64,000 bases of DNA, taken from positions 248,001 to 312,000 of the forward strand of contig CBFDEM010000043.1 in the NCBI GenBank assembly GCA_965603825.1, read 5' to 3'. Below the pieces are notes generated by a model. That model saw only the letters and a list, made by a program, of their open reading frames with translations, was not told the DNA's origin and did no database searches. Positions 18,301-50,799 of the stretch are shown here, piece by piece; within the stretch, counting starts at the first letter, position 1, and each line of letters starts with the position of its first letter. Origin of the DNA: Blepharisma stoltei ATCC 30299. Its lineage: Eukaryota > Protista > Ciliophora. A program made the position numbers and the translations under genes.

Positions 18301-18514
18301 CTGTTTTTCCACATAAATCCTGTTGGGCTAAAATTGAAGTATCAAAAGCGAATAAGCCCATAATTAGATGTGATCTTTTAGCCAAGACAAGATGATGAAA
18401 AATATTGAGTAACAAGTGATCTTGGCCTTGCAAAGAGGAGCTTTGAACCTTTAAAAAGGATAGGACTTGAAAGTCATCAGAATTCGAGTAGATTAGCTCT
18501 AAAGCCTCTTCCAT
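6380..18514 (-). CDS. Giant (~4044 aa) ankyrin-repeat / filamin-Ig / HECT E3 ubiquitin ligase
   Basis: All 13 track ORFs from 18514 to 6380 share one frame, and the junctions checked are TGA. Ankyrin motifs (GKTVLHFLA, TALHWAA, TPLDVAC), filamin-like strands, and HECT (EPGIDGGGLSREFF; FLRFVTGSSRIP; LPTASTC). Confidence 0.9.
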
Positions 18515-18556
18515 GTTTATTGCTTAATAATTTACTTATTAATAGAAAAGGATAAA

Positions 18557-27001: not shown

Positions 27002-27709
27002 TTAGATTGCTAAAGCTATTACTTTATTCATATTAGATCATGGCAAGCACACCTCCTCAATTGGATCCATCTCATCTAATCCTGTCAAGCTCTCACATGA
27101 AGAAGATTCCTCAATAGGTTTAAAGCAAAAGCCATCATTATTGAAAAAGCAATCATCATCTTGAGTGTTTTGGTCACTCGAGGTGTTTCTACACAAACCG
27201 GTATAGTCAAACATTCCTGAGTTTCCTTTTTTCACTCTTCTGATGATGCTTTTCCATCTGTTTTTTACACTGTTTTCGGTTCTTCCTGGGAGACATTTTG
27301 CGATAAGACTCCACTTGTTACCGAATTCCTTTTGCTTTTGGATAATTAAATCGTCTTCTTCATATGACCAGCCACCCTTTTTAAGGGCTGGATTTAAATG
27401 ATTGCACCACCTTTCCCTACATTGCTTTCCGTTTCGGACTGGCTTGTTGTTGTAGATTTTTTCGTTAAGCTCTTTGGCGATTTGGGCCCACTTTTTGCTG
27501 GATTTCGTGGGAAAAAGGCTTAAGAGCATGTCATCTTCTTGTTGGGACCAGGGATGGCGCAAATGGCTGGCTGGTGCTACAGGCTTGTAAAGTGGATAAA
27601 ACTTGTGCTTGACGTCGTCAAGTTTGCAAGGAATCATCCAGACCCCATCTTCAACCTTATAAGGGCTGCATGGCTGATGATGGTTGTTGTCTTGGTTTAA
27701 AAGTTCCAT
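27002..27709 (-). CDS. R2R3-type Myb transcription factor, paralog 1
   Basis: WSQQEDD...RNGKQCRERWCNHLNP...WSYEED...GNKWSLIAK.LPGRTENSVKNRW; first TAA at 27002 if the TGA at 27038 is Trp. Confidence 0.9.
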
Positions 27710-28217
27710 ACGTGAGGGAAAATCCTATTTATTTATAACCATTGCCAGAATATGGGTTTAAATTGTTGATAATTTTACAAACATTTACATATGAGGTCTT
27801 ATAAAACTTTGACCGATTGTTGATCGGAATATAAATGGACAATAAAGAAAAAAACCAAAGATCAAATCCAAATTTTTGAGGAGAAATAAAAAATCCATTG
27901 GAAATTGGAGAGGTAATCGCTTAATTAAAGGAAATATAAAAAAGTAAGGATTTTTATTGAATAAATAATAACTTCAATACGCTTTAAAAAAGTCTATACG
28001 AGTCCACCAATTGTTACAGAAAAATGGCTTATTGATGTTGAAATTTAACATACAAAGATGATGCCAAAAATAATGATATTTATTCTATATGAAGAAATGC
28101 ATTTTCTTGGTAATTAATGCCTTTTCACAACATTTTTAAAATATCATCTGAAAAGTTATTGAAAATTTTTTGGCAAAGAATTGTTATAAAATAATTAATT
28201 TGAGTATTTAAAGGCAT

Positions 28218-28886
28218 TTAAAGACAGAAATCTTCAATCGGATCTATTTCATCAAGCCCGAGCTCGATAAAAAGAATATCCTGATCCCTATTTCTGATCG
28301 AATAATTTTGGCTTTCCTCAGTATCTTCATGTGAATCTGTGCTTGAAGTATCAATACCCGCACCCGTGGCATGAGTAAGAAACCCTGAGCTTTCGCATTT
28401 TCTTTTCCTCCCAATACTTTTCCATCTATTTTTAACACTGTTTTCAGTCCTTCCTGGCAAAAATTTAGCAATAATGCTTCATTTATTGCCGATTTCTTTT
28501 TGTTTTATGATAATAATTTCGTCTTCTTCATTACTCCAGCTTCCTTTTTTGAGATCTGGGTTTAAATGGTTGCACCACCTCTCCCGACATTGTTTTCCAT
28601 TTCGAATAGGGGTGTCGTTATGAATTTTTTGATTAATTTCCCGAGCTATAATAGTCCACTTTTTAGTAGTCTCGGTAGGAAGATGGCTTAAGATTATGTC
28701 ATCTTCTTTTTTAATCCATGGATGTCGCAGATGGCCTTTTGAAACTCTCGGGTAAACGAGAGGATAATACTTCTGCTTCATGGTATCCAGCTTACAAGGA
28801 ACCATCCAGACCTCATCATCGAGCCTGTAAGGGCTAAGTAGTGGATGATTGCTGTCTAAGTTGATGTTTTCCATAGGAGCAAGCAT
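28218..28886 (-). CDS. R2R3-type Myb transcription factor, paralog 2
   Basis: Same motifs; the invariant Trp in GNKW is TGA (28479-28481) here and TGG in paralog 1. Confidence 0.9.
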
Positions 28887-29551
28887 CTTATGGTATTTTG
28901 ATAATTATTTGTCATCCATATTTGGATGAACTCATAAGTTTAAATTAAAACTAAGAATTTAATTTCTAGATATTTCCATTTAATGCTTTATTGCAGCTGA
29001 TAGATGGACGAAAGAATAGATTGGTATCGGATTTAAAAATTTAAAAAAACATATTAAATTTATTAGGATGAATTAATTTTAATAGCTTTAAAAATTCTAT
29101 GGGTGAAGATTAAGACAAATGAGCATTCTTAACTATTTGTAAGGAATTTGCATATTCCTTCTTTAGTATTTGAATTTCGAAAAGTGTTTATTTATTAGCA
29201 TATTTCTTCTAATTTTCAAACATTTTTTTTGCTCATTTGGTTCAGAAAGTTTTTTGCAATAATTGTAAATTTCAAAATAGTAGCAATTTTCTCCAAATAA
29301 AATTAGATTACCATTAATATTCTTAAAATCCAATTTTTAGCAAAAATTAATTTGAATTATATATCGTAAATTTCAAAGTAAAATTAATTATTTTGTTACT
29401 GACAATAACATTTTTTTTTGTCTCATAATAATTGTATTTTTCTTATGCATCCTTTAATCAAATTATCCATTATAAATAAAAAACATTTGACCTCTGATTT
29501 AGTCAGTATTGATATTAGATATGATAAATTAAACATTGATTAAATAAACCC

Positions 29552-32500
29552 ATGGTAAATATTCTAAAACGAAAACATGAGGACAAAGATCTTGATAATC
29601 TCCTAACAATTTCTCGAAGGGAACAGATATATCGCAGTCTTTCTCAAGATAGAGTGAGCCATTGAAAGTCAACTCTCTTTGAAGTTTTCATTTGGCTTGA
29701 TTCAACTAATGGAAGATTGAGCAAAACAAGCAAGCTCGAAAGCTTTTTAAATTACTCAGCTCTTATTATAAGAAAATTTCAACTTTTATCCTTGATCCTC
29801 TTGGATTATGATCTAAGTGCATCAGCTACTTTATTGTCAATTTTCAATATGTCAATGATAGGAATAAGATTTGATGCTTTAGCAACAAAATTAAATGGCC
29901 AAACGATTTATCTTGTAGCATTATTGTCAAATGTTTATTTATGAGGATTTTTTGTTTTACTTTTATACTGCCAATTTTATTTTAAAAAAAATATTCAAAG
30001 AAAAGTTGTTATTGTCTGTGCACAAATTACTGGGTGGCTCTGTGAGTATATTTTGCTCATTCCTTACATCTATACAACTACATTATACATTAAGTATTCT
30101 TTGATTTCATATAAAAGTGTAACTGAGTATGGGGATATGAGTTCTGATGACCTTGACTGATTTTTTATTTTGCCATTGATTTTTGGAGCAGTGATTTTTC
30201 AATTTTTGTTATATTTTAGACTAATTTATAGTTGCCATCCAACATATTCGATCAAGCATAAACGAAGTAGGATGTATTCTTTTGCCACTTTAAAAGATAT
30301 TTTCGTACAAGAAATCATAATTGTTTTGTCGCTTTTTCGTTTCAAATTTTACTTCGAGATGATATGTAGTATATTATGTTTGTACATGATTTCTCAGTAT
30401 GCTATATATTTTCCTTTTGTTACAGTTATTGATAATGTATTTGAAGCAAGCACTTTTGTGTTGCTAATATTTGGAATGATTTCTTATATTATAGCTGATA
30501 GCTTGAATGCTTTATACACAAAAACACTTTTTATTATACTAGTTTTCCCTTTTATCATTTTTTTATTTTATTATGCTATGAATTGATTTTTTAATAAAGT
30601 TAATAACTGTCCATTAAAAGACCCTTATTCTGCTGAACTTGAAATTCGAAAAATTATTAATAAAAGAATTAATAGTTTCGGGAATGATGCTATTGAGGAT
30701 ATTAAAAGCATTTTTACAGAGATAACAAAGAAGTTTTTATCATTTAAACTTATCTTTATCTGAGAGTGCATATTCACGTTACATTTTAGACACAATAAGT
30801 CTCTTGCACTACTAAAATTATCAAAAATTAACTTATCTTGCCCAGAGCATTTAAAGATTTATTACAGTAAAGATAGACAAATTTCCAGATATTATAGTTG
30901 TCCAAACTTAGAATGTGAATTTTTATTTTATTTTTATTACAAGAAACTCATAAACGAAGAAAAATCCGAAGATTTAGCTCTTTTGAGGTATTTAAAGGAC
31001 ATAAGCGAGCTTAAAGATCTTGATTTGGATGTCTTCTTAGAACTATGAAACATTTATCAAAAGCTTTCAAGCATATCAAAGCACCCTGCTAATGAAATTA
31101 ATAAGGCTTGCGAAAGACTTATTGACTCAAAGCAAAAACTTGAATCTAGAGCTGAAAAATTAATAAAAAAATATCAGACTGACTCTGATCTATTAGAAAT
31201 TTATGGATCTTATATGTCTGAATTTTTGAAAGAAGAAAGAGGAGATATAATCCTGGCAAAAAGTAGAGCGCTTAAGGAATATAATGATATTGCGATGGAA
31301 AAAATAATGGGGTTCAAATTTGAAAAAGGGGCTTCTATTATGGTCGTAAGTGGGATGTTTGGGTCAATCGGTGATATTTTGTATTTAAATAATGAAATAC
31401 TTCATTTATTGGAATTAGAATGTATTGACGATTACATTGGCACAAGTTTTATTCAGTTTATTCCGGCTCCTTTTGATATCATGCACAATGATATTTTAAG
31501 AAAATTTTTGATTTTTGGTGACAAAATTGAGTTGTACAGGCCTCATCAATTTTTAATTACAAGCCAAGGTCACTGTGTAGAGGTTAGTATGCATTTTCGT
31601 CTTGTTTTTTATAAGCAAATTCCTTATTTTATAGCTGATTTTAACCCAAGAGGACACAGAAAAAATTTAATCTTGCATTCTCCAGACGGTTATATATATG
31701 CAGTTTCAAAAGAAATTCAAAAATACATCGGAAATCGAGAAGGAACTATTTTCGAGATCCTTAAAAACTTCATTTATTACTATGAAAAATATGAAATTGG
31801 CGAATGCTTTGAGTATAATGAAGAGTTTTCATGAACAATGATGAGGTTTAGGCTAACAATAGATGGATATGCACTAGAAGTTTTATATATAGCTGATTCA
31901 AATGAAGCCATAACTCCATTAGATGAATCACCTAAACTGAAATACCAAAACAAGTCTTATAATGAAACTACTCATTTAGCAGAATTTTCTATAGAAAATG
32001 AAGAAATTTCTTTAAAAAACCATATCGTCAGCAGCAATGCTGAAAACTCAACGGTTGCATCAAAAAAGAGAATCCAAATTAGAACGGAGTCTGCGAATAA
32101 GAGGATTTTAGCAATGTGCAAAGTTTTGAATATGAATATAAGAATTGCTTTAGCCATTTTATTTGCTGTTACTTTTACAACTATATTTCTGGAGAATAAT
32201 TTTGTGAGCAGTTTAAAATTATATGATATGCTCAACCAAATGGCTTTGATGAGATATTTAGGAAATTCTGTTCTTGTTAATATAAGATCTTTGGATTTAC
32301 TAAGTCAAGGGTTTGAGACATCATCTTCAGAGGCTTATTATAGAAATTTGGCAAAAGTAAACTCAAATACCCTTCAAGAAAACTTAATGCTTGTTAATGA
32401 TAAATTAACATCTTACAGTTTTTTTCATGATGTGTTTTATACAAAGGTTTCTTTATCAGAAAAAATTGATAATTCTATAAGAATTACTGATGAAAATTTA

Positions 32501-33676
32501 TTTCATTGCATTCAAAGGTACGTTTCGCACGTGAATGCAATAGTTAACACAAAACTTGAAGATTTTCATACAATTCCTTCAGACTTTTATTTTGTCTATT
32601 ACAATTTTCCTACCATAATTTTGCATGCTTTAAACGATAGCGTGTATACAACATCAACAGATTTTAAAGAACATGTTGAAGATACATTTAGATTTCTAAA
32701 ACTTTTCAAAATAGCTTTTTTCATTCCTCCAATTATTATCATTATTTTATCATTGCCAAGTATTATTGTGCTTGAAAAGATAAACAAAACAAATTGACAC
32801 AGCCTTTCACATCTAAACGCCGATAAGAGATCAACTATAAGATATAAACTTATTGATCGGCTTCACAATTTGCATGGGATAGACGTTAATAATATCAAAC
32901 TCAAATCCAGTGGCAAAGAAAATTATTCTCCAATTTGAAAATCTTTCATTATAAAAATCCTTTCATTACAGGTGATTAGTATCATCTATTATTTTGCTGT
33001 TTCGTATGGATTTGAGGCTGATTTAAGTGAAACTTTTATCTATGAATCAAAATACATTTTTAATCATGGACTAAGAAGAATGCTTTCTGCGAATTCTTAT
33101 TTCTGGGCAAGAGAGAAGTTTTTAGACAGTGTAAATTCTTCTTTTATCAATTGACTCGACAATAATAAACTGGCAACACCCTCATTTTCAGTAAAGCTTG
33201 AATCAGTGACTGATGAGTATGAATTTCTTATACAAACATTAAGTTATGGAAAATACGCAAAATTTTATAATGATGATATGATTGAGCTGGAATTTGGAAA
33301 CCCTTGTAAGATCATTGGAGAATCGATAACAAACTGTGATAGTAGTTATATTAGTGCGGGAACAGTTCCAGCAATGAAAATTTATTTGGAAGATTTGAGA
33401 GGCAGTTCTATTTATAGCCAGTCGAATTGGAAAAATATCAAAAAATTAGAAGTATACTCGAGTTTAATAGTAAAATCTGCACAGTATATGATGTTTAATT
33501 ATCTCAATGCGACTGAAAGCAATATTGAAAACACTATAGCAAACTTAACAATTGCTACAGTGTTTTATTTTATCAGTATTGTGTTTGCATCAATTATTTT
33601 GATGCTTGGTGCTGTAAACAAAATCAAAAAAGAATTAATAGGCAAAATCGAGATTTTGAAGTTTTTTAGAAATTAA
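29552..33676 (+). CDS. Multi-pass membrane PAS-domain protein (TmcB/TmcC-like), paralog 1, ~1374 aa
   Basis: All track fragments are in one frame joined by TGA; N-terminal TM bundle, helical region, PAS (GDILYLNNE...FIPAPFDIMHNDIL), four C-terminal TMs. Confidence 0.85.
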
Positions 33677-34360
33677 AGCAGATGTTATCTCAACTATAAT
33701 TTACTCTAAAAAATATTTAATTTTTATAACTTATTTAATGTAAATAAAAATGGATTGTGATAATTATTTTATACTACTTTATATAATCAAACTAAGGAAA
33801 TTTATGAATTTTTAATATTAATTTCTATAAGCTTTCAATTATCCTTTTATTTTCTTCTACATAAGCATTAAGAAATGAAAAAAGTTGCTCATTTTTGGAA
33901 TAAATAATTAATATTGGATTAAAGAGTTGATAACTCATTAAATATGTTTAATCAATTTCGATAATATTGGAGAAAAGTATATTTTTTTTAATTTTGTAAA
34001 TGATGATCCTGAGTTTATCTGCTTAAAATCTCAAAATAGCTAATAAATTGATGCGGTTGTCAATATTTACATATAAATGAGACAATCTATCAATATTCTA
34101 ATTAGCTTTATATTTTCAATTATTCAAATTTTGCTTTAACAACTTTATAGGCACGCCAAACTAAACTATAAGCTTTTTCGGCCTGCTAAAATGGAAAATA
34201 TTATCAATTCCAATCAAAGTTCAAAATTCTTATTAAATTCATTCTCAATTTCTTTTTTACAATAAAAGCATAAATATAAGTAAAAAATTAAACATATTTG
34301 TATCAGTACTCCATATTATCACAATATTTTCAACATTTATAATCATAAATACAAAATCTC

Positions 34361-37300
34361 ATGGAAAGTATTCTTGAAAAAGACGAAGAAAAAAGGGATC
34401 TTGATAATTTAATAGCAATTACTAGAAGAGAACAACTTTATCATAGCCTTGCTCATGATAGAGGCCATCGGTGAAAAACAACTCTTTTTGACGTCTTTAT
34501 TAGGCTTGAATCAATTGACGGAAAAAGAAAAACCAACAAATATCAAGTTTTTCTAAATTATTTAGGACTCATTGTAAGAAAATTTCAATTGTTGTCGATG
34601 GTAATTTTTGATTATAATTTAGATCCGTCAGTCTCTTTGATTGGGATATTTAATTCGCTGATGGGTGGATTAAGATTTGATGCCTTATCAATTAAATTAA
34701 ATTTTGAAATTGGGTATCTTATAATTTTATTATCAAGTGTTTACTTGTGAGCTCTCAGTTTTGTACTGCTTTACATCCAGCTTTATTTTAAAAAGAAGTT
34801 TTTGAGAAAATTAATAATAATATGTGTAGGGACTTTTGGTTGGCTTTGCGAATATATGCTTTTTATTCCTTATATTTATACCACCTTATTGTATCTCAAA
34901 TACTCTTTAAATTCAAATGAAAATGTAACTGAATATGGAGACATCAGCACTAATCGTCTCCACACTTATCTTGCATGGCCACTTGTATTTGGAGCAGCAA
35001 TTTTCCAGTTAATTTTATATTTTAGAACAATCTGTAGCTGTAATCCTGCTTATTCGTTAAAAAATAAAAGAAACCGAATGTATTCTTTGACAACTTTAAA
35101 AGATTTTTTCGCTCAAGAATTCATTGTGATTTTATCTTTCCAAGGTTCCACGTATTATTTTGAGCTTGTATCAGTAGTATCATCTTTATATATCATTTCT
35201 CAGTACTCCTTATACTTCCCTTTTGTCACTATTTTTGATAATGTTTTTGAAGCTGGCACATGGCTAATATTGATTTTTGGTGTGATTTCGCATATTGTTG
35301 CTTATGACATTGGAGCTTTAAGTGCAAAAGTCCTTTTGATGATTTTTGTGTTTCCCTTAGCAATGCTTCTCTTTTATTATTTTATGCAATGATATTTCAA
35401 TAATATAAATCATTCAACTCAAGAGGATCCTTACACAGTAGAGCTTAAAATTCGTAGGCTAATTAATGGGAAACGCGCTCAAAATTTTAACAATGATCTT
35501 CTTGAAAAAGTTAAAAAAATTTACACTGAAGCAACCAAAAAATTTCTCTCATTCAAACTTTTGTTTATTTGGGAATGCTTATTCACCTTGCATTATAGAA
35601 ACAATAAATCTTTGGCATTGCTTAAGCTATCAAAAATCAATTTTTCCTGCTCAAAACATCTAAAAATCTGGTATGATCAGGATCGACAAATTTCTAAATA
35701 TTTCAGTTTTCCAAACCTAGAAGCAGAATTTTTATTTTATTTTTATTATAAAAAACTTATCAATGAAGAAAAATCTGAAGATCTTATCCTTCTAAGATAT
35801 CTAAAAGATATGAATGAATTTAAAAACAAAGATTTAGAAGTGACATCAGAGCTATGGAACGTTTGCAAGATGATTTCAAATATGTCAAAGTTTCACGTAA
35901 AGGTATTTAATCGAGCTTGCAAAAAGCTGATAAATGCAAAACGCATTTTTGAGATAAAAGCTGAAAAAATGATAAAAAAATATCAGTCAGATTGTGATTT
36001 ACTTTCGATTTATGGATCTTATATGGCAGAGTTTTTGGAAGAAAATGAAGGGAATTTATTTTTAGCTAGAAGTCAGGCACTGAAAGAATCGAATGATGGA
36101 GGGATTGAAAAACTGACGGGGTTTAAGTATCAAAAAGGGTCAGCGATAATGGTTGTAAGTGGAATGTTTGGGTCGATTGGTGATATTTTGTATCTAAATA
36201 ATGATATTCTTGATTTGCTGAAAATAGAGTGCATTGATAATTATATTGGGACAAGCTTTATTCAATTCATGCCTGCCCCTTTTGATGTGATGCATAATGA
36301 TATTTTAAGAAGATACCTAATTTTTGGTGACAAAATCGACCTATTCCGGCCCCACATGTTTTTAATAACCACAAAAGGCCACTGTGTTGAGGTTAGCATG
36401 CATTTTCGTCTTGTTTTCTATAAACAAATTCCATATTTCATAGCAGATTTTAATTCAAGAGGACACAGGAAAAATCTAATATTGCATTCTCCAGATGGCT
36501 ATATATATGCAGTTTCCAAAGATATTCAAAGTTTCATTGGAAGCCGGAAGGGCACCATTTTTGAGGTGATTAAAAATTATATCTATTATTATGAAGACAA
36601 TGAAGTTGGAAAATGCTTTGAGTACAACGAAAATTTTTACTGCACAATGATGAGATTTAGCCTATCAATTGATGGATTTGTTTTAGAAGTGCTATATATC
36701 GCTGATTCTATTGAAGCTATTACTCCATTAGATAGCTCACCTATTACTAAAACAAGAACTGCCTCGTTCAATGAATTCGGCGCTTATAAAACTGACGTTT
36801 CTATGGAGCCTGACGAAAATTATTTAAAAAACACTATGGGGAGCAATCATACTTATGCTTCATCAATTTTATCAAAAATCCAAGGAAAAAGAGAAATTGA
36901 AAAAGCAAACCTAAAAATACTAAAATTGTGCAGTGCTTTAAATATGAATATAAGAATCGCGATATTTGTCCTTTTTATTATCACCTTTATAACAATAATT
37001 TTAGACACTGCGTTGATCAGTAATCTAAAAATGACAAGCATGCTTGAAGATCTCGCTTTTATGAGGTATTTGGGGAATTCTATGCTACTAAATATAAGAT
37101 CACTTGACTTGATCAGTCAAGAGCATGAACCTGCATTTTTTGAAGAATATTATAGAAATTCAATTAAGGAAAACTCAGAAACCCTTGAAAACAGCATAAT
37201 TCTTATCAATGATGATATTTCCTCATACAACTTTCTACACAATATTTTTTCTAACCATTTTGTCTCTATCTCTGAAAAAATTGAAGGAAATTTCATAAGG

Positions 37301-38485
37301 ACCACAAACGAAAATTTGTTCCATTCTTTGCAAGCCTACATTTCTCATGCAAATGTAATAGCGAATACCAATATAAAAGATTTCCATACCATCCAGAATG
37401 ATTTATATTATGTTTATTATAATTTTCCTACAGGAATTATAAGAACTTTAAACGAAAGTGTCCATACAATTTCCATTGATTATCAAGATCATGTGGAAAA
37501 TACTTTTTTATTTTTGGAAATTTTTAAAGTTACATTTTTTGTTCCACCAATAATTATGATAATTTTATCAATTCCAAGCGTTATTATATTAGAAAAAGCA
37601 AATAAGACAAATTGGCATAATCTTTCGCATTTGAATATTGAAAGACAACAATATCTAAGAGACAAACTTATGGATAGGCTAAGAGATTTGCATGGAATTG
37701 AAGTTGAGCATATTGAGCCGAGGCTTGGAAAAACTGAAATGTACTCTTCAGTTTGGAAAAAATTCATAATAAAAATATTTTTGCTGCAGATTATCAGCAT
37801 TATTTATTATTGTGCTGCTCTATATGGATTTCAAGTCGAGTTAAGTGAAATTTTTGTTAGTCAATCAAAATACATTTTTAGTCAGGATCTGACAAGCATG
37901 CTATCAGAAAATTCTTACTTTTGGGCAAGAGAAAGATATTTAGATGGCCTAAATGAATCTTTTATTGGTTCAATTGACAATAAATCGCCATTTCCTTCTT
38001 TAGAAGTTCAGCTCGAAAAATTAATAGAGGAATACGAGTATTTTGAAAATCTGATTACATATAAAGATTTCAAAAGGTTTTACAATGATGATATGATAAA
38101 TTTAGAAGTTGGAAATCCATGCGATAAACTAGAAGATTCCTTATCAAACTGCAAATATAGTTATTTGGGTGTAGGAGTCACTGCAGCAGTGAAAATGTAT
38201 TTAGAAGAATTAAGAGACTTTTCTGTTTTCCAACGTTCAAATTGAGAAAATATTATAAGATTAGAAAAATACACAAACTTAATTATAGAATCCACAATTG
38301 CCATGATGCATGTTTACAATGACTCTATGGATCAAAAAATTAATGAAAACATTATCAGATTGATGGTTACAACGCTAATGTATTTTATTTGTCTGGTTAT
38401 TGTATCAATTATACTTGTTTTCGGAGCTGTAAATAAAATTAAGAGAGAATTGATTGGAAAAATTGATATTTTAAAATATTTTTAG
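34361..38485 (+). CDS. Multi-pass membrane PAS-domain protein, paralog 2, ~1374 aa
   Basis: ATG 34361, single frame to TAG; colinear with paralog 1. Confidence 0.85.
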
Positions 38486-39084
38486 AAGTATATTATCTGA
38501 AAAAGCTATTTAAGTTCAAATTTTGATTTGTAATAGTAATAAGATTTATTATAAATAGCGAATTAGTAAGTCATTTAAGTCTCCTGCGCTATCTTATTAG
38601 AGGCTCGTCATTGCCATTTCATAGGAAGCCATCTTCCAAATTATTTCCAATAATTAGTTACTATTTGAGGAAAATTATAAAGAAATAAAATCTAAGCTCA
38701 GCAAATTAATAAATAATACCTATTAATTATTTATTATTTTCATGCATTGGCGAAGTTAAGCCTCAAATAAGGGCTCACTTAAATCGCTTTCTCTTCTTTG
38801 GTGACATCATAAGTATCATCTCAAATATATTTAGATTTTAAAATTGATAATTGGTTCTTTTTTACTTCTTTATTAATAAAAAATAATTTTAAGTACCCAG
38901 GAATTAAAATCAGAAAATTTTATCGCTAATTATTGAAGTAAATGAAAGCCTAAAATATATTAGTATTTAATAAGAATTTTAATTTGCAAATATCACAATA
39001 ATCTTCTTAACTCGATTATAGTTCTCCAGTCATGATAAAAAGAATTATTAAATCAGTATAAATAAAATCCATATAAAATCCAGC

Positions 39085-42000
39085 ATGGATTCAGAAGCAG
39101 AAAAAAGACAAGGAAGCGCTTCATTTAAATTTGACACATCAACATCTAAGCGTGATATTTTGTATAAAAGCTTAGAAGCCGAAAGAGCAAACCGCTTTAA
39201 AATCACTCTTTTTGATACCCTGATAAAGCTTGAAGGTAGCGATAACAAAAGAAAAATAAGCAGAGAGCGCCTGATACTGACTTATCTTTCACTATTTATA
39301 AAAAAAATTCAACTTTTATCAATTATACTCATAAGCTTCGAGACATCTGACAACGTTACTCTTGAGTCCTCCTTCAACGTGTTGTTAAGAATTCTGAGAT
39401 TTGATATCCTGAGCATTAGTTTAAATATTCAATTAGAATTTTTACTTGTTATGATAGGTGGCATTTGAGGCCTTTGCATAAGCTTTTGCATGATTTATCT
39501 TCAAATTTTTTATAAAAGGAAAATCGCTCTGAGGCCCGTTCTTTTTTTAACCAGTTTGCTGGGATGAATATTTAAACATGTTTTTTGCATCCCTTATTTG
39601 TACAGTGTAGGGATATTTGTAAAATATACTTTTTTTGATGATAATTCTGAGGTTGGAGAATATGACAATGTGAGCGCCTCAAATTACAAGACATTTTTAG
39701 CTCTACCTTTAGTTTTTGGAGTGCCGATCCTAGCTTTGAATATTTATTTTAGGACAATTTATTATTGTAATCCTTGTTACACAGCGAAAATCAAGAGAAA
39801 TAGAATGCATTCTTTGGTGACGCTTAAGGACAATTTATTTCAGTTTATTATTGTTTTTGCTTCATTTTATCGTTCAGCAGCTTATTTTAATATTTTATGT
39901 GTTATTATTTCGATTTATATGATTTCACAATATATTTTTTATATGCCATATGTAGCAATGTTTGATAATGTATTTGAAGTCGATACTTGAACAATGGTTT
40001 TATTTGGAGTCATAGCATATCAGATCTCTATTTATATTAATACAAACTCCGTACGTGCTTTAATAATGATTTTTATCTACCCGTGTATAACATTTATCAC
40101 CTATTTCTTAATGAATTGGTATTTCGACCGAGCTTTAAATTTTCCAATTACAAACCCCTATAATGTTGAGTTAAAAATAAGAAGGCTTATTTTTGGCAAA
40201 AAGCCTCGAAATTTTCAACATAATTTAAGCGAAAAAATAAAAACGATGTACAAAGACGCAACGAAAATATTTTTATCCTTTAAAATGCTATTTGTTTGAG
40301 AAAGCTTATTTTATTTACACTATGAAAGAAATAAATCTTTAAGCTTGCTAAAATTATCAAAAATTAATTTTTCCTCCCGAAAGCACTTGAAGATTTGGTA
40401 TCAGCTTCATCGCAACAAAGCAAGATACTACAGCTTTCCGAACTTAGAAGCTGAGTATTTATATTACTTTTATTATAAAATGCTTGTAAATGAAGAGTTT
40501 GCAGACGATTTAACATTAATAAGGTATATAAAAGACATAAATGTGCTGAACAGGAGAGATTTAGAAGTGACGTGCGACCTGTGAGATGTCTATAGAAAAC
40601 TATCAGAAATTTCTGAGCATTCTTTGGAGTCAATTAATGAAGCATGTACAAAGCTTGTCAAGTCAAAAAAAAAATTTGAAGAAAAAGCTGAAAAAATGGT
40701 CAGAAAGTATCATTCTGACCCAGCTGTTTTGTCGGTGTATGGATCATATAAAGCTGATTTTTTGGAACAAAACCAAGGAAACTTACTTTTACAGAGAAGT
40801 AGAAGTTTAAAGGGCTCGAAAGATACTGGAATTGAAAAAATCACAGGAATGAAATACAGACAAGGAGACGCAATTATGGTGGTAAGTGGTATGCATGGGA
40901 CTATTGGCGATATTTTGTATTTAAATAATGAAATAGCCAAACTTTTGAACATTGATTGTGTTGATGATTATATAGGAACTACGTTTCGCCAATTTATCCC
41001 AGCTCCTTTTGATGTGATGCATAACGACATATTAAGGCGAGGGCTGATTTTTGGGGAAAGAATTGAACTTTATAGGCCAAGCCTTTTTTTAATTACAACC
41101 CGAGGGCATTGCGTAGAAGTTACCATGCATTTTCGGCTTGTGTTCTTTAAACAAATCCCTTACTTTATTGCAGATTTTAATGAAAAAGGCTATAATACTA
41201 ATTTAATTCTTCATTCCCCGGATGGCTATATATATGCAGCTTCCAAAAACATTAACCAACTGATCGGTAATAGAAAAGGTACAGTATTTGAAGTTGTAAA
41301 TAACCTTGCGAATTATTATGAAAATTATAATCCAGGAGTCCCTTTTGAATATCATGAAGATTTCGACTGCTTTATGATGAGAATTACACTAGTTATAGAT
41401 GGATCGCCATTAGTAGCATTATATGTAGCCAACGATTATGAATATTTTGCACAGATGAATAATTCAGACGAAAATACCCCAAAACCTCATCATGTAGAAT
41501 CTTTTAATGATGGAGGATATAAAACTGATATTACAATGGAGCCTGAAGAATTAAATTTGAAAAGTGGCTTGGCGAGCTCTTTTACATATGCCTCAACTGT
41601 TTTATCCAAAATGGAAAAAAAATATGAAAAAGGAGAAAAGGAAAGTAGTAAAATTGCAAGGCTTTGTAATTCCATGAATGTGAACGTTAGGATTTCTAAT
41701 GCAGCTTTGCTTGGGATTATTATTGCTACGATCATCATAGAAAGATATGTAGTTAATGAACTGAAAATATCTAATTTTCTAAGCAATTTTTCTACTCTCA
41801 GGCACTTAGGAAACAGTATATTATTAGATTCAAGATCCCTTGATCTTTTAAGTAAGGGCTATGAATTAGCATATGAAGAAACTGACTATCGAGCTTCTCT
41901 TCAGTCAAGTATAAATAACTTTGAAAATACACTATTACAAGTCAGTGATGAAATATCAAATTATGACTATATGGATGATGTTTTTGTTACAAAAAAGGTC

Positions 42001-43221
42001 AAAACGACAGAAAAAACAGGTGAAAATGCCTTGAGGATTATTAAAACTAATTTATTCCAAGCTTTGCAAAAAATTATCCAAGAAGGATACACAATCTACG
42101 GTGCTGAGCTTTCTGGATTTCAAGGAATTCAAGCAAGTCTATTTTATATTTATTGGAATTTTCCTGGGGAAACATTTAGAAGCTTAAATAGCAGTCTTAA
42201 TTCTATTAACGACGAAACACATAATCATATATCTTCAGTTTTCGAATTTTTGAAAATTTTTAAATTGATTGTTTTTATCCCTTCTATGCTTATTATCATT
42301 CTTTCTATTCCAAATCTAATTGCTCTTGAAAAAATCAATAAAGAGCACTGAAATGAGCTTTCATCGCTAAATATAGAAAGGCAAATAGCTTTAAGAGAAA
42401 AACTAACTGTAAGATTATCTGAGTTCCATGGCATTCAAGTTGAAGAAATAGAGCCAAAACACACAAAAAAGGCAGTTTATTCATCTATTTGAAAAACATT
42501 TCTGTTTAAAGTACTTTTTTTAGAACTTATCAGCATTATCTATTTCTTTGTTTCTATTTATGCTATCCAAAACAGCATAAGTGAAGCCTTAACTTATCAG
42601 TCTAGCTACAGGCTTAGATCAGGCTATAGAAGATCTCTAACAATATCTACTTTCTTCTGAACAAGAGAGCTTCTTTTATCAGAAACCGAATCTTCTCTAA
42701 TCAATACTCTTGATAATAAAAACCCTTATCCTTCAGTTATAAAAAGCTTGCAATCCTCAATTGAGGACTATGACTACCATGAGCATCTTATTGACTTCGG
42801 CTCGGCAACAAAATACTTTGAGCATGACATGTACAACTTACTAATTGGAAATCCTTGCAGCGATGCTGCCAAGTCCATACCTAACTGCCTTACTAGCTAT
42901 ATCAGCACAGGAATGCTGCCTGCGCTTGAATTGTATTTGGATGATACAAGGACTATTTTTTTTGATAATAGCTCAAATTGGCAGGACGTTATCAAACTAG
43001 AGAAATACTCAAAATTAATAAGTAACTCAGTAGGGCTGATGACAGAGAGCTTTATGAATTCTACTGATGATAAAATTGATGCATATATGACTTACTTGAC
43101 GATTACCACTTTACTCTATTTTTTTATTTTGCTTTTAGTTGTATTATTACTTGTCTTAGCATCTGTTAATAAAATCAAGAATGGTTTGATTGGAAAAATT
43201 GAGATCCTCAACTATTTTTAA
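39085..43221 (+). CDS. Multi-pass membrane PAS-domain protein, paralog 3, ~1378 aa
   Basis: Single frame with TGA=Trp; same PAS core and C-terminus GKIEILNYF*. Confidence 0.85.
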
Positions 43222-43491
43222 GCTTAGATTATTCGTTAACTTATAAAGTTAAATTGTAATTTTGCTAATCAGTATTTCTTATCACTGGTTTTATAAAATC
43301 CTTAATGAGCATTTCTAGAGTTGAGCTAAATATTAATATACACTAAATTACTTTTATCCTTATTATCAAAGAATATTAAGAAATAAATAATATTTATTTT
43401 ACATAGGCCAATAAGATCTTATTTTAAAGGTCGTTTCTTTTTAATATAAAAATTACATGATTTTTAAAATAATAATACAATAAATTAGCAT

Positions 43492-46400
43492 ATGGATTTA
43501 GGAAAAGAAAAGAAAAGAAGTAGCAATTCATTTAAGCTAGACACATCCACATCCAAAAGAGACAAACTTTATCAAAGTCTTGAAGCCGATCGGGTTAGTC
43601 ATTTTAAAAGTGCTTTATTTGATGTATTTATTACTCTTGAGGGCTGCGATAGCAAAAATAAAATAAGCAAGCAAAGACTTGCAATAAACTATACTGCGCT
43701 ATTTATAAGAAAACTGCAACTTCTATCACTGATTTTAATAAATTTTGAGGCTACTTCAAATATCAGTTTAGAATCTGCTCTAAGCTCCTTGTTAAAGGTT
43801 TTAAGATTTGACGCTATCTGCGCAGAGCTTAATCTTGGCCTTGGCTTTTTAGTATTATTAGTTATATCTATATGATGTCTTGGATTAAATTTTTTTATTA
43901 TCTATGTGCAGGCTTATCGTAAAAAGAACCACGCTATAAAATCAATTGTCTGTATTATAACTGTACTAGGATGATTTTATGAGTATTTATTGTGAATTCC
44001 TTATTTATATAGCGTTGGAATATATTCAAAATATACTTTTTTTGTCAATAACTCAAGAGTTTCTGAGTATAGCAATATAGATTCCAACGGTTTCAACTCA
44101 CTTTGATCAATTCCACTGATTTTTGGGTTACCAATTTTAGTTTCAAATATTTTTTTCAGGACAATTTACTATTGTAATCCATGCTATACATCAAAGCTCA
44201 AAAGAAATAGGCTGCATTCGCTTGTAAGTATGAAAGATCTTTTATGCCAACTTCTTATGATTTTTTCTTCGTTTTACAATTCAACGTTTCATTTTAATAT
44301 GATTAGTGGATTTATATCTATTTACATGATTTTTCAATATACTATATATTTGCCATTTGTATCCATATTTGATAATACATTTGAAGCTGGAACTTGAATA
44401 CTAGTTTTACTTGGAATAATCTCGTATCAAATTTCAAGAGAAATTAATACTGCATCTATTCATGGACTCATCATAGTATTTCTATTCCCATGTATAATAA
44501 TGCTTTTGTATTATTTAATGCACTGATATTTCAACAGAACTTTAAATTCAAAAAAACAAAATCCATACTCAGTTGAGCTGAAAATTAGAAAACTAATTTT
44601 AGGAATAAAGCCAAAAGATTTCACAAGCAGCCTCAATATAGAAATAAAAAAGATTTTTAAAGACTCAACCAAAATATATTTATCTTTTAAGATGCTATTT
44701 GTATGAGAATGCTTATTTTATTTGCATTATGAGCGTAATAAGCATCTTGCACTTATGAAAATATCCAAAATTAATTTTTCTTGCCAAAAACATCTAAACA
44801 TATGGTATCAGTCGAACAAAAATAAACTAATTCACTACAGCTATCCCAACATAGAGCCTCAGTATTTATTTTATTCCTATTATAAAAAACTTGTAAATGA
44901 AGAGCATTCTGAAGATTTGGTCTTATTACGATACATCCGAGACATAAATTCATTCCGAAAATCTGACTTAGAAGTATCATGTGAGCTCTGGGATGTTTAT
45001 CGTAAACTCGCAGATATATCTGCCCATTCCGTAAAATCCATACAAAATACTTGTCTAAAACTCGGAAAGGCAAAAAAAAGGTTCGAAGAAAAAGCTGAGA
45101 AAATGTATAGAAGGTATCACTCAGATCCTGAAGTACTTTCTATATATGGATCCTATATAGCAGACTTTTTAGGGGAAGAAGAAGGAAAATTGCTACTGCA
45201 TAAAAGTAGAAGTCTAAAAGACTCAAAAGACCTGGGTGTTGAAAAATTCACAGGGTTTCAGTATCACCATTTAGGAGCATCCATAATGATAGTTAGCGGA
45301 ATGTTTGGATCAATTGGAGATATTCTTTACTTAAACAAAGAAATTTGTGAGCTGCTGCAAATAGAACTTGTCGATGATTATATTGGAACAAGTTTCTGCC
45401 AATTTATTCCAGCTCCTTTTGATGTGATGCATAACGATATTTTAAGAAGAAATCTTATCTCTGGTGACAGAATTGAATTATACAGGCCAAGTCTTTTTTT
45501 AATCACCACGTCAGGTAACTGTGTAGAAGTTACAATGCATTTTCGACTTGTGTTTTTCAAGCAGATCCCATATTTCGTTGCAGATTTCAATGAAAAAGGT
45601 CACAATACTAATTTAATCCTCCATTCCCCAGATGGTTATATATATGCTGCATCTAAAAATATTAATGATTTAATTGGAGAAAGGAAAGGGACGGTTTTTG
45701 AAGTTATTCACAATCTTGCTGATTATTATAAGAATAATAGCTTGTTCAAGCCATTTGAATATCATGAAGATTTTAATTGTGTCATGATGAGAGTCAAGCT
45801 TGTTATTGATGGTTCACCATTAGAAGCTCTATATATTGCTCAGAATTATGAATATTTTAAAGAAGGAGGTGGCTCAGTAAACCATTATGAAGAAAGCCAA
45901 AAAAGTGGATCGGTCCAGGAATTTGGATTTAAGACTGATGTTTCTATGGTTGCAAGTAAGTCTCTGATGAAAAGTAATATCACAAACTATTACATGCATC
46001 AATCAACTTTACTATCTAGAATAGAAAAAAAGAAAAAATCTGAAAAAAGCAATTTGGAAAGTAGTCAAATTACTAAGCTTTGCAGCCTCCTAAATTTTAA
46101 TATCAGGTTTTCATTACTTGTTTTATTTTCTATAACCATTGCTACTTTAGCTACAGAAAAAATTATCACAAATGAACTGAAAATGTCAAGTTTTTTAAAC
46201 TCCTTTGATATAATGAGATTTTATGGTATTTCTATTATTCAAGACTCCAGATCTCTTAATCTATTAGAAAAAGGATATTTATTAACTTACCCCGAGGAAT
46301 TTTATCGGTCTTCCCTTCAATCAAATCTTGAGAATTTTGAAAAAAATTTAATGTCTGCAGGTGATGACATATATAAAAGAAGCTATATGCATAACGTCTT

Positions 46401-47637
46401 CTCTATAGCAAAAGTGTCATCCACTGAAAAATATGGCAATAATACTTTTCGGACTATAAAAATCAACCTATTTCAAAACTTGCAAAAAATAATTAAAGAA
46501 GGCTCAATAATTTTAAACACAGAGCTTGCAGATTTTCCTAAAATTGACTCAAGCTTTGCGTATCTATACATGAATTATCCTTGAGAAACCTTCAATCATT
46601 TAAATGACAGCGTTTATATATCGTTAGAAGACATTGAAAGCCATACAGAATGAGCATTTGAGTTTTTAAAAAGTTTGAAACTGACTTTTTTCATCCCTTC
46701 CTTATTAATCATAATGCTATCAATCCCAAGTATTATCAAGCTTGAAAAAATAAATAAAAAAAACTGAAAGTGCTTATGCAATCTTGATATAGAGAGACAG
46801 ATAGAGATAAGAGATAAACTTATTGATAGGCTCTATGTCTTTCATGGTGTTCAAGTCGATGAAGTTGAGCATAAGTATTCGAGAAATGCAATTTTTTATT
46901 CACATTGAAAATCATTTATGCTGAAAATTTTGATCCTTGAAATATTAAGTTTGGGCTATTATTTTGCTGCTGTATATGGATTTCATGGGACATTAAAAGA
47001 AATTTTAATCTCTCAGTCAGAGTTCATTTTTTATTCTGGAACTAGAGGAATGCTATCTTCAAGTGCATTTTTTTGAGCAAGAGAAACGTTTTTAGATACT
47101 AAAAATGACTCTCTTTCTGTTTTTATTGGGGATTTTTACCCATTTCCATCACCGAAAAAGCAGCTTCAGTCGATGATTGATGACTGCCTCTATGCTCAAA
47201 ATTATATTGACTATAGAAAACCTCATAAATATTATGATGACAACATGATTAATTTATTAATAGGGAATCCATGTGAATCAAATGATAAATTTGTGCAAGA
47301 TTGCACCAAAAGCTATATCAGCATGGGGATTAAGCCAGCTATCAAAATCTATTTAAACGAGTTAAAAAGAGTACCAAGCTATAATAAAGCAGATTGGCAA
47401 GATATAAATGATTTAGAAAAATATTCAAAAATCATTGATAACTCCACAATTTATATGCAGAAGAGCTATATCAATTCAACTGACTCAAAAATCGATTCTG
47501 AAATGGATGATCTAATCATTTCAACACTTTTATACTTCTTTTTCCTTTTAATTATCTCTTTTTTACTTATTCTATCAGCAGTAAGTAAAATAAAAAGAGA
47601 TTTGCTGGGCAAAATTGATATCTTAAAATATTTTTAA
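43492..47637 (+). CDS. Multi-pass membrane PAS-domain protein, paralog 4, ~1381 aa
   Basis: Single frame with TGA=Trp; same PAS core and C-terminus GKIDILKYF*. Confidence 0.85.
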
Positions 47638-48538: not shown

Positions 48539-48756
48539 CTCAGCTTAGAGTTAATTTATTTTTACTTAAAAAAATTTGAATCACAATCCCTTTCCACATC
48601 CATTCAAAGAATTCAAAATTTTTTAGTTGCATAGCTATTCACATTAATATATGTCTAATTCACTAGCTTCCTATCCGCACAGAGTTTCTTAATTAAAGAT
48701 AGAGAATGGTTAATTTAATGAGCAGTGCTGAATTAATAAAATAATTAGATTTCATC

Positions 48757-50799
48757 ATGTCCAAAGTCTTTCCTGGAACCAACAAAGAACTATTCCTATC
48801 TGGGCCAAAGCAGCTAAATATTTGAAAATTACGAGCAAAAGAGCTGCAAAAGGAAGAGCCACGGCTCAGGAGTAACCCAGAATTCAAAAACGTGAAATGT
48901 ATTATTTTCCCTGACGATCATTTTATGACTTTTTGAAGAGTTATTTTATTTCTCTTATTATCATATACAATTTTTATTACTCCATATAGAATAAGCTTCG
49001 TAGAAGTTGACACTAAGAATTGGCAAATAGCAGATTTATTTGTTAATGCACTGTATTTTCTCGATGTTTTGATCAACAGTATTTTAGCTTATTATGACAG
49101 TGAAATGAACGTAGTAACCTCCAATAAAAAGATTTTTCTTAATTATTTAGCAGGGTGGATGCTGATTGATTTATGCTCTTGCATCCCAATAGACATGATA
49201 ACAGAAACCGATAAAAATTACTCTGGATTAGTCAGGCTAAGCAGACTTCCAAGATTATACAAATTAGTGAAGCTGACCAAAATGATTCGTCTTGCGAAGG
49301 TTGGGAAAATGAAAAATAAGGTTGCAAGGTATATGAGTAACCTATTAAAAATAGATGCTGCATTAGAAAGGCTTTTTTGGCTTATTATCACCTTTCTCAT
49401 CCTTATTCATATTTTAGCCTGCCTGTGAGGGTTTATAGGACAAATCATGCTTCTTGAAACTGACAAAAATTGGATAATGCAAGGAAATTTCCAAGATCTA
49501 GAAATGTTTGACTTATATATTTGTGCAGTTTATTGAGCTGTGACCACATTAACTACTGTTGGATATGGAGATATCCACGCTTGGAATCTATATGAAAGGA
49601 TAGTTTCCTGCGCTGTAATGATTATAGGCATTTTTATTTATTCTACTTTTATTAGTTCTTTATCCAATATCTTGACAAACACTGATACCCTTGAGTCTAA
49701 GCTAGAAAAAAAAAGAGACATAGTAAATAATTTAGCAAAACAATATAATATCACTCCAGAGTTCCATAGCAGACTTATAGATGCTATTGAATATTATCAA
49801 AGGCATGACAGGACTGACTTAGACTCATTGATTGAGGATTTGCCAATTAATCTTAGAACACAGTTGCTTATTGTGATCTATAAGAAAATCCTCGAAAATA
49901 ATGCATTTTTTGAAAATAAGCAGCCGCAGTTTGTGGCGTATATAGCGCCACTTCTGAAGCCTTTCAGAGTAGAAGAAGGAGACCATATTTACAAAGCTGG
50001 AGAAGTTGCTGCTGATATTTATTTTATAGTGAAAGGAGAAGTCGTGATGGTAGCTGATTACGAAGACAATACCAAAATTCCTTTTAATATATTAAAAGAA
50101 GGCTATTACTTTGGAGAAACTGATTTTTTACTAAATGAAGAGCGGGAGCACTCATATAGCGTTAAAGCACTAAAGAGGACTGAACTATTGGTCCTCCCAG
50201 GCGATGATTTTGAAAATGCTTTAAGAAATTTTGAAGAAGACGGGCTAAGTGTATTGATGTTAGCAAAAGAGAGATATAATAGACTTAAAGAAAAAGAAGA
50301 AGAAGCTATCGAGGAATATAAGAATAAAAGAAGAATCAAACGATTTCAAAGCTTCCCGGTTATGACTCCTATCTCGAAAAAAGACCTTTTAAAAATTATC
50401 CAGAAAACTCAAGAAGAAAAAGATGATGACAAAATGACAGTAAATGAAGAAGAAGATTTCAGGAAAGAAAATGAATATTTAATTCCTGGAGAAAATAAGG
50501 ACTTCGATATGCTAGGGGAATCTTGAAAAAGTCAAAGTTCTCAAAATTCTTTGAGTAGGAATAAATCGATTTTTAATTCGATTTTAGAAGAAAGATATGG
50601 AAATAGTGAAAAAGAAGATGAAGTTGAGAAAAAAATAGAGAGATTGGAGGAAACTATCATGTGTGTCAAAGAAACAGTTATGAGTTTGTGTAGAATACAC
50701 GGATGCCAAATACCGAAAGGAATGATGGAATATAGTGCTCCAGTTTCTAGAACTGGAAGCGCTGTGAGTTATGATGCAAAATTAAATGTACTTCAGTAA
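48757..50799 (+). CDS. Cyclic-nucleotide-binding voltage-gated K+ channel (EAG/KCNH-like), ~680 aa
   Basis: S4 RLSRLPRLYKLVKLTK; pore YW(TGA)AVTTLTTVGYGD; CNBD GYYFGE; single frame. Confidence 0.95.

Follow-up and report, generated by a model that had tools for sequence, protein, structure and literature searches.

Heme-binding PAS domains occur in FixL, where they feed a histidine kinase, and in DosP, which itself combines a heme PAS-A with a PAS-B domain. In Chlamydomonas, the FXL proteins are reportedly eukaryotic membrane proteins with a FixL-like PAS that binds heme and O2 and with no kinase domain; as such, they would presumably be the closest functional precedent for the proteins described here, and our literature search returned nothing on them. 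To our knowledge, the membrane sensing of oxygen and chemicals by free-living protists is largely unknown, and many animal receptor families lack an obvious counterpart in ciliates. Dictyostelium TmcB is the only studied relative of the genes dealt with here and their sole functional anchor: tmcB is key to macrocyst formation, regulates the cyclic AMP (cAMP) pathway, and responds to hypoxia with induction after 24 h (PMC12750705). The literature yielded no structural or biochemical study of the TmcB family and nothing on PAS families in Blepharisma, and the TmcB family goes unmentioned in the genome preprint (main text). Here, we describe a tandem array of four TmcB-like genes, g1 to g4, in a 64,000-nt window of the Blepharisma stoltei assembly (41.5 Mb in 64 contigs). 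The window corresponds to positions 248001 to 312000 of contig C43, and all coordinates without a contig name refer to it. What was already known is that the family is named and in Pfam and that these genes are in the public annotation; what is new is that they form a divergent subfamily missed by the Pfam model, with orthologues in Stentor, in an array that was copied with its neighbors to a second contig. We estimate a probability of roughly 55% that the encoded proteins act as two-sided sensors that carry no enzyme themselves, in which the ectodomains would respond to ligands outside the cell and a PAS-A cofactor, putatively heme, to conditions inside it, with a conformational output.

Four intact genes read with TGA as tryptophan

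The segment from 29.5 to 47.6 kb of this window (G+C content, ∼30%) falls into fragments when it is read with the standard code (or table 11). When stops were limited to TAA and TAG, four plus-strand open reading frames (ORFs) of 1,379 to 1,390 codons appeared at 29528-33676, 34349-38485, 39052-43221, and 43489-47637. In the alignment of the paralogues, TGA faces Trp 14 times and any other residue at most six times, indicating that TGA encodes Trp. The standard code, the ciliate code with TAA/TAG as Gln, and a code with TAG as Gln were rejected, since each of them interrupts g1 to g4, as were readings of TGA as Cys or Gly, because the paralogue alignment favors Trp. The resulting genes, all on the plus strand, are g1 (29552-33676 from the first ATG; 1,374 amino acids [aa]; P0003), which has 10 in-frame TGA codons between ATG and stop; g2 (34361-38485; 1,374 aa; P0001), the copy used for AlphaFold modeling; g3 (39085-43221; 1,378 aa; P0004); and g4 (43492-47637; 1,381 aa; P0005). 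Their products share 43 to 59% pairwise identity, and in the tree g1 and g2 are paralogues of one type (type I), and g3 and g4 are paralogues of another (type II). The four uninterrupted genes that had been read from the sequence alone are thus recovered at the same positions and lengths. The products are also identical in length and sequence to entries of the public protein collection, so that uninterrupted models of all four are already on record. A pseudogene reading was rejected because the ORFs are intact and the nonsynonymous divergence (dN) is far below the synonymous divergence (dS).

The array encodes a divergent branch of the TmcB/TmcC family

The proteins are not recognized by the family model itself. 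A Pfam scan gave no match to PF25474 (TPR_TmcB) at an E value (E) of ≤1 in any of 7 subfamily proteins and none at E ≤0.01 in the corresponding segment of g2 (P0001:344-600); g1 to g4 are missing from the genome-wide list of PF25474 matches, and their PAS matches in Pfam are all below threshold (E, 0.006 to 0.15). Membership was established through relatives. L009, a canonical Blepharisma member detected by Pfam (TPR_TmcB, 5e-19; PAS_9, 1e-7), aligned with g2 in BLASTP (E, 1e-10; 21% identity; 632 colinear residues); the alignment starts in the membrane domain, crosses the helical region, and extends into the PAS region. A second BLASTP segment spans the first transmembrane (TM)-loop-TM module, and the two proteins share the IIPSPF..SH motif. 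Among 95 homologues, 67 carry a PF25474 match in the region equivalent to residues 344 to 600 of g2 (best, 7.5e-20). By language-model features, g2 adjoins Atlas clusters that carry PF25474 (score, 0.98), and the structure modeled for its TPR-plus-PAS cassette matches that of an Atlas cluster of ciliate TPR_TmcB/PAS_9 proteins, with a template modeling score (TM-score) of 0.65. An exhaustive profile search retrieved 406 relatives among the representatives; for 99 of these, E was ≤1e-30. Relatives include a full-length orthologue in Stentor coeruleus, annotated as "PAS domain-containing protein" (E, 7e-275), a transcript of Fabrea salina, and, in UniRef, a B. stoltei "TmcB/TmcC TPR repeats domain-containing protein."

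Colinearity with L009, the PF25474 matches of the homologues, the structural match of the cassette, and the orthologues together show that g1 to g4 belong to a heterotrich-wide and divergent branch within the TmcB/TmcC family, which thus reaches past what its Pfam model detects. The resemblance in architecture to TmcB and TmcC pointed out by the original prediction is supported. The parts follow the same order as in canonical members, with a multipass N-terminal domain, a TPR-like region, a PAS domain with an IP.P[FY]...H motif, and TM-loop-TM, and there is no enzymatic domain in either; in g2, this layout was recognized by hydropathy, by AlphaFold, and, for the first module, by BLASTP. In contrast to canonical proteins, which measure 1,500 to 1,700 aa, g1 to g4 are ∼1,375 aa long, fall under the Pfam threshold, are only ∼21 to 27% identical to them, and form a clade of their own with orthologues in Stentor and environmental eukaryotes.

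Layout of g2 and its N-terminal membrane domain

The AlphaFold model of g2 covers residues 1 to 1160 (95 sequences) with a predicted local distance difference test score (pLDDT) of 86 and a predicted template modeling score (pTM) of 0.75. It ends before loop 2 and the last TM helix (TM-d), which were placed by Kyte-Doolittle hydropathy. Both methods agree on the layout. From the N terminus, the model shows a cytosolic helix, ∼8 TM helices, the TPR-like region, PAS-A, PAS-B, a linker, TM-a, an extracellular bundle, TM-b, a short cytosolic helix, and TM-c. Hydropathy places ∼8 TM helices in residues 60 to 347, cytosolic residues at 348 to 860, a TM helix at 861 to 888, loop 1 at 889 to 1058, a TM helix at 1059 to 1077, a further cytosolic stretch at 1078 to 1135, a TM helix at 1136 to 1157, loop 2 at 1158 to 1338, and a TM helix at 1339 to 1357, followed by a 17-aa tail.

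Hydropathy, AlphaFold, and conservation delimit the N-terminal membrane domain (residues 60 to 347; 34538-35401, plus strand), in which the modeled helices occupy residues 60 to 82, 116 to 142, 149 to 183, 202 to 225, 243 to 258, 264 to 285, 291 to 317, and 321 to 347. This agrees with the 8 or 9 hydrophobic segments counted previously. Residues D107, P170, and N294 of this domain are near-invariant in 79 to 95 sequences. It is followed by a cytosolic TPR-like solenoid of eleven helices (residues 357 to 586; 35429-36118, plus strand), the equivalent of Pfam TPR_TmcB according to AlphaFold, BLASTP, and the PF25474 matches of homologues. Downstream of the PAS pair, residues 791 to 834 (36731-36862, plus strand) form a linker predicted to be disordered (pLDDT, <50), and a long helix (residues 833 to 888) ends as TM-a. 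Pfam detected no catalytic domain in g1 to g4, be it a kinase, a cyclase, or another, and neither HisKA nor HATPase_c, the kinase output of FixL, was matched. The polypeptide ends 17 aa past TM-d, much as had been anticipated (no kinase or cyclase and a stop ∼20 aa after the last TM helix).

PAS-A resembles the heme-PAS domains of FixL and DosP

The PAS model (pLDDT, 87.9; pTM, 0.82) consists of two tandem PAS folds. PAS-A comprises residues 592 to 702 of g2 (36134-36466, plus strand) and was delimited by profile, AlphaFold, and structure searches; PAS-B comprises residues 705 to 781 (36473-36703, plus strand), was delimited by AlphaFold, and is accompanied by tandem-PAS matches to DosP, HIF-ARNT, and CLOCK-BMAL1. 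Both motifs quoted in the original prediction recur without variation across 7 sequences, and the NLILHSPDGYIYA stretch provides the first two strands of PAS-B.

Single-sequence phmmer searches with the proteins gave no match among PDB sequences. A profile of 7 PAS sequences had the heme domain of RmFixL as its best PDB match (E, 0.005), and a profile of 104 sequences retrieved RmFixL at E 7.2e-8, followed by BMAL1 and CLOCK at ∼5e-4 and by BjFixL and DosP at 0.05 to 0.09. The alignment of PAS-A with RmFixL is gapless over the Fα helix (residues 641 to 655 of g2) and sets His645 (codon 36293-36295, plus strand), located by the profile alignment and by the model helix, on the FixL His preceding DGYLQRY. 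In the 104-sequence profile alignment, position 651 (R/K) falls on the FixL Arg and position 652 (Y/F) on the FixL Tyr. The same alignment has only six near-invariant residues, namely, G607, N613, L620, P638, H645, and E677; across the family, His645 is found in 123 and Pro638 in 132 of 140 PAS regions.

Structure searches with the model gave the same picture. Foldseek ranked DosP at the top for the tandem PAS (2.6e-9) and BjFixL as the best single-domain match (TM-score by target, 0.79; 1.6 Å). With VIA, the top 18 entries for PAS-A were all heme-PAS domains. BjFixL superimposed on it with a Z score of 17.3 and a root mean square deviation of 1.6 Å over 104 of 105 residues; RmFixL (Z, 16.3), FG214 (16.1), and EcDOS/DosP (15.1 to 15.5) also exceeded the best non-heme PAS domain (14.8). 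This ranking was unchanged in a Foldseek-independent search of 48,161 representatives. Sequence and model thus support PAS-A as a true PAS fold whose nearest relatives are the heme-PAS domains of FixL and DosP, as the original prediction had proposed from a FixL-like segment, and they support a FixL-like pocket with a proximal His as a candidate heme site. In common with FixL (1d06, 1xj6, and 1dp6) and DosP, PAS-A has the fold and a position for the proximal His on Fα, then R/K and Y/F; with DosP it also shares the tandem PAS-A/PAS-B layout. Unlike these proteins, g1 to g4 are eukaryotic, lack histidine kinase, GGDEF, and EAL domains, and hold the PAS pair between 8 and 4 TM helices; identity is 17 to 20%, and heme is a prediction in g1 to g4. 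Among ciliate PAS proteins, a "PAS domain S-box protein" of Tetrahymena (Q22AC6; 1,177 aa) is listed with the ciliary proteins in a cilia proteome table (PMC10522465).

TM-loop-TM modules and their ectodomains

AlphaFold and VIA define the first module (residues 861 to 1077; 36941-37591, plus strand) as TM-a, loop 1, and TM-b. Loop 1 is modeled as a four-helix bundle (residues 892 to 919, 928 to 953, 986 to 1002, and 1012 to 1058) with an inserted β-hairpin (residues 967 to 985), and its last helix continues via TM-b and ends on the cytosolic side at residue 1089. In the search of 48,161 representatives, residues 885 to 1048 matched the sensor domains of PcaY_PP (Z, 13.7; 141 of 143 residues), HK9 (Z, 12.8; 126 of 127), and Adeh_2942 (Z, 12.2; 142 of 145); PilJ, McpN, McpS, and MCP2201 were also found, and the sensor domains altogether ranged from Z 11 to 13.7. 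A four-helix-bundle sensor fold, suggested earlier as a matter to be checked by structure prediction, is therefore what the model returns for loop 1, in the likeness of chemoreceptor and kinase domains. The resemblance to PcaY_PP (6s18), HK9 (3va9), Adeh_2942 (4k0d), and McpN (6gcv) extends to a bundle of ∼140 to 165 residues between two TM helices, the last helix of which enters the membrane. In contrast to these bacterial sensors, g2 has no sequence or Pfam kinship with them, carries the hairpin, and is devoid of a HAMP or signaling domain after the bundle. Neither 4HB_MCP nor a related Pfam family was matched, and profiles of either module had no match among PDB sequences.

The second module (residues 1136 to 1357; 37766-38431, plus strand), recognized by hydropathy and conservation, consists of TM-c, loop 2, and TM-d and precedes the 17-aa tail. 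A near-invariant N1031 heads an N-x-S/T sequon in loop 1, and loop 2 has a near-invariant pair, Cys1254/Cys1264; both features fit extracellular loops. By the density of N-glycosylation sequons, the loops and the cytosolic parts are not distinguishable. Comparison of the two modules by hhalign aligned their C-terminal halves with a probability of 59% (E, 9e-5), and as far as sequence goes, the modules may derive from an old internal duplication.

Divergence by domain

We compared the domains within the close pairs (g1-g2 and g3-g4) and across them (mean of the four cross pairs). PAS-A is the most conserved (identity, 0.80 to 0.83 within close pairs and 0.75 across), followed by PAS-B (0.74 to 0.78 and 0.55) and the TPR-like region (0.63 to 0.65 and 0.52). 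Loop 1 (0.50 to 0.56 and 0.36), loop 2 (0.43 to 0.46 and 0.38), and the N-terminal membrane domain (0.50 to 0.56 and 0.39) are lower, and the linker at residues 791 to 860 is the lowest of all (0.33 to 0.35 and 0.32). Synonymous sites are saturated (proportion of synonymous differences, 0.55 to 0.8), dN amounts to 0.27 to 0.33, and dN is well under dS in every domain; given this saturation, dN/dS cannot show diversifying selection, and dN and identity are the usable measures. Variable loops around a constant core, as the original prediction pictured these proteins, are therefore half right. The loops are indeed more divergent than PAS-A, but the idea is weakened by the N-terminal membrane domain, which varies as much as they do, and by the uninformative dN/dS.

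Two-sided sensing and its alternatives

In the mechanism that we favor, the helical bundles, judging by their fold and topology, would bind ligands outside the cell, and the conserved His of PAS-A would carry a cofactor, which in view of the FixL-like sequence and model is most probably heme. The heme could then report intracellular O2, NO, CO, or redox state. The combined state might be relayed by a conformational change to the TPR scaffold, where partners would be recruited, and/or to the N-terminal membrane domain.

Several observations weigh against this proposal. The output is a guess, since no relative of the N-terminal domain is known; that domain matched no PDB sequence, and all of its Atlas leads scored below 0.9. 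The proteins themselves miss the Pfam thresholds for TPR_TmcB and PAS, and their loops are not specially variable. In PAS-A, the orientation of His645 derives from the sequence alignment and the helix position, and the His is absent in 17 of 140 relatives. Nor is a FixL-like distal Arg family-wide: of 140 relatives, 48 have Arg663, a candidate residue at the start of Gβ that is present in 6 of 7 subfamily proteins, and 76 have R or K at position 651; the distal/propionate-binding Arg residues of reference are presumably R206 and R220 of BjFixL. As for loop 1, designed helical bundles are among its structural matches, and Z scores up to ∼13 are common for bundles, unrelated or designed ones included; the observed values (11 to 13.7) are of a size that helical bundles can attain by chance. 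What the comparison establishes is hence the fold and the TM-bundle-TM topology, not kinship with bacterial sensors.

The alternative that survives best keeps the family and the fold but makes PAS-A heme-free, with the His-Pro motif serving folding, another small ligand or a metal, or a protein contact, and with the proteins acting as scaffolds or sensors of something other than gas. The weakness of the direct Pfam PAS matches (E, 0.006 to 0.15), the patchy distribution of the distal Arg and, to a lesser extent, of the His, and the fact that AlphaFold is silent on cofactors and that many PAS domains are alike at Z 13 to 15 are all compatible with it. However, FixL stands apart from other PAS domains in sequence (7e-8 versus 5e-4), heme-PAS domains fill all of the top 18 structural ranks, His645 is one of just six near-invariant residues, and the H-x-x-hydrophobic-hydrophobic-x-[RK]-[YF] face is as in the Fα helix of FixL. 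We therefore consider a heme-free PAS-A unlikely, if still credible.

A second alternative assigns the effector role to the membrane. The 12 TM helices would make up a channel or transporter that the PAS pair and the ectodomains merely gate, in analogy with KCNH channels, which are modulated by PAS domains. Conserved polar residues do lie in or near the TM helices (D107, Q140, K144, R239, K247, and N294), and the near-invariance of D107, P170, and N294 in 79 to 95 sequences, the want of any other output domain, a pTM of 0.75 suggestive of a compact assembly, and a weak Atlas lead to a TRP-like channel cluster (score, 0.82) would all suit such a function. Yet no channel or transporter family was matched significantly in Pfam, PDB sequences, or the Atlas, and a score of 0.82 lies under the level that the Atlas tool counts even as a lead; we regard this explanation as distinctly improbable. 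A role of the subfamily as receptors for the Blepharisma mating pheromones (gamones), which would echo TmcB in Dictyostelium sexual development (PMC12750705) and suit both the likeness of the ectodomains to ligand-binding bundles and a genome preprint that covers gamones 1 and 2 without naming a receptor, is very improbable given the full-length Stentor coeruleus orthologue and the many environmental relatives, which show that the subfamily is not specific to Blepharisma, and the at least 149 genome matches of the wider family.

A bolder proposal, which we rate as unlikely, would be that TmcB-family proteins, this subfamily included, are the main chemosensory receptors of heterotrichs, a eukaryotic receptor class combining four-helix-bundle ectodomains of bacterial type with an intracellular heme-PAS gas/redox sensor and signaling via a new 8-TM effector instead of a kinase, a cyclase, or a G protein. 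With at least 149 matches in a single 41-Mb genome, the family is a strong candidate for oxygen and chemical sensing in protists; its members combine an orphan membrane domain with a PAS domain like that of FixL and an ectodomain like those of chemoreceptors, and the function is a modeled one. Heme spectra of the 110-residue domain, with and without one His, offer a direct experiment.

Copy number and duplication history

The B. stoltei genome contains at least 149 matches to PF25474 TPR_TmcB, and the family appears to be one of the largest of this genome. The original prediction overstated the case in this respect, as the four genes are not a small special family; they belong to one divergent branch of this larger set, which has about 8 intact copies in two syntenic arrays. 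The PF25474 matches are mostly arranged in arrays with ∼5-kb spacing, on contigs C17 (367 to 553 kb), C4 (32 to 197 kb), C35 (401 to 490 kb), C46, C25, C32, and C38.

A sister array of the subfamily lies at C63:277354-297608 and comprises three intact genes (A, B, and D), one split copy, and one C-terminal fragment. The split copy (287047-291116) is distributed over two ORFs of 625 and 774 aa, through a stop or a frame break, and the fragment is at 296562-297608. Flanking genes pair between C43 and C63 with 50 to 78% protein identity, indicating that the whole block was duplicated. The paired segments are positions 19366-50796 of the window and C63:249786-307093 (loci L013 to L020), with at least six neighbors in the same order and at a near-equal distance from the contig start. 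This diverged syntenic pair suggests an old duplication, either of a segment or of the whole genome. In the tree, type I genes group as (g1, (g2, C63-A)) and type II genes as (g4, (g3, (C63-B, C63-D))); with two old types, at least four genes must be older than the block duplication. The array stems from an old tandem duplication and was copied later, with its neighbors, to the second contig. Gains and losses after the block duplication are a case of birth-and-death evolution.

Genomic surroundings

The array has ordinary eukaryotic genes as neighbors in the window, including those for ANKRD13, a giant HECT ligase, a GAS2-domain protein, and TCP-1. Neither tRNA genes nor Rfam families were found in the window. 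Two paralogous Myb-domain genes (27005-27724 and 28221-28904, both on the minus strand) are located just upstream of the array and have one counterpart on C63. Immediately downstream (48745-50796, plus strand), an ORF with Ion_trans, Ion_trans_2, and cNMP_binding domains encodes a cyclic-nucleotide-binding K+ channel, which is kept in the C63 block. Its position next to the array may be a coincidence, though an action on the cAMP pathway has been described for Dictyostelium TmcB. Elsewhere in the assembly, near-identical full-length matches to small-subunit rRNA occur on 15 contigs (e.g., C23:325801-327541 and C1:566520-568260), so that the ribosomal DNA is dispersed and not confined to one chromosome. 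Back in the window, a single minus-strand ORF of ∼4,048 codons, when TGA is read as Trp, extends over 6380-18523 and has a HECT domain at its end.

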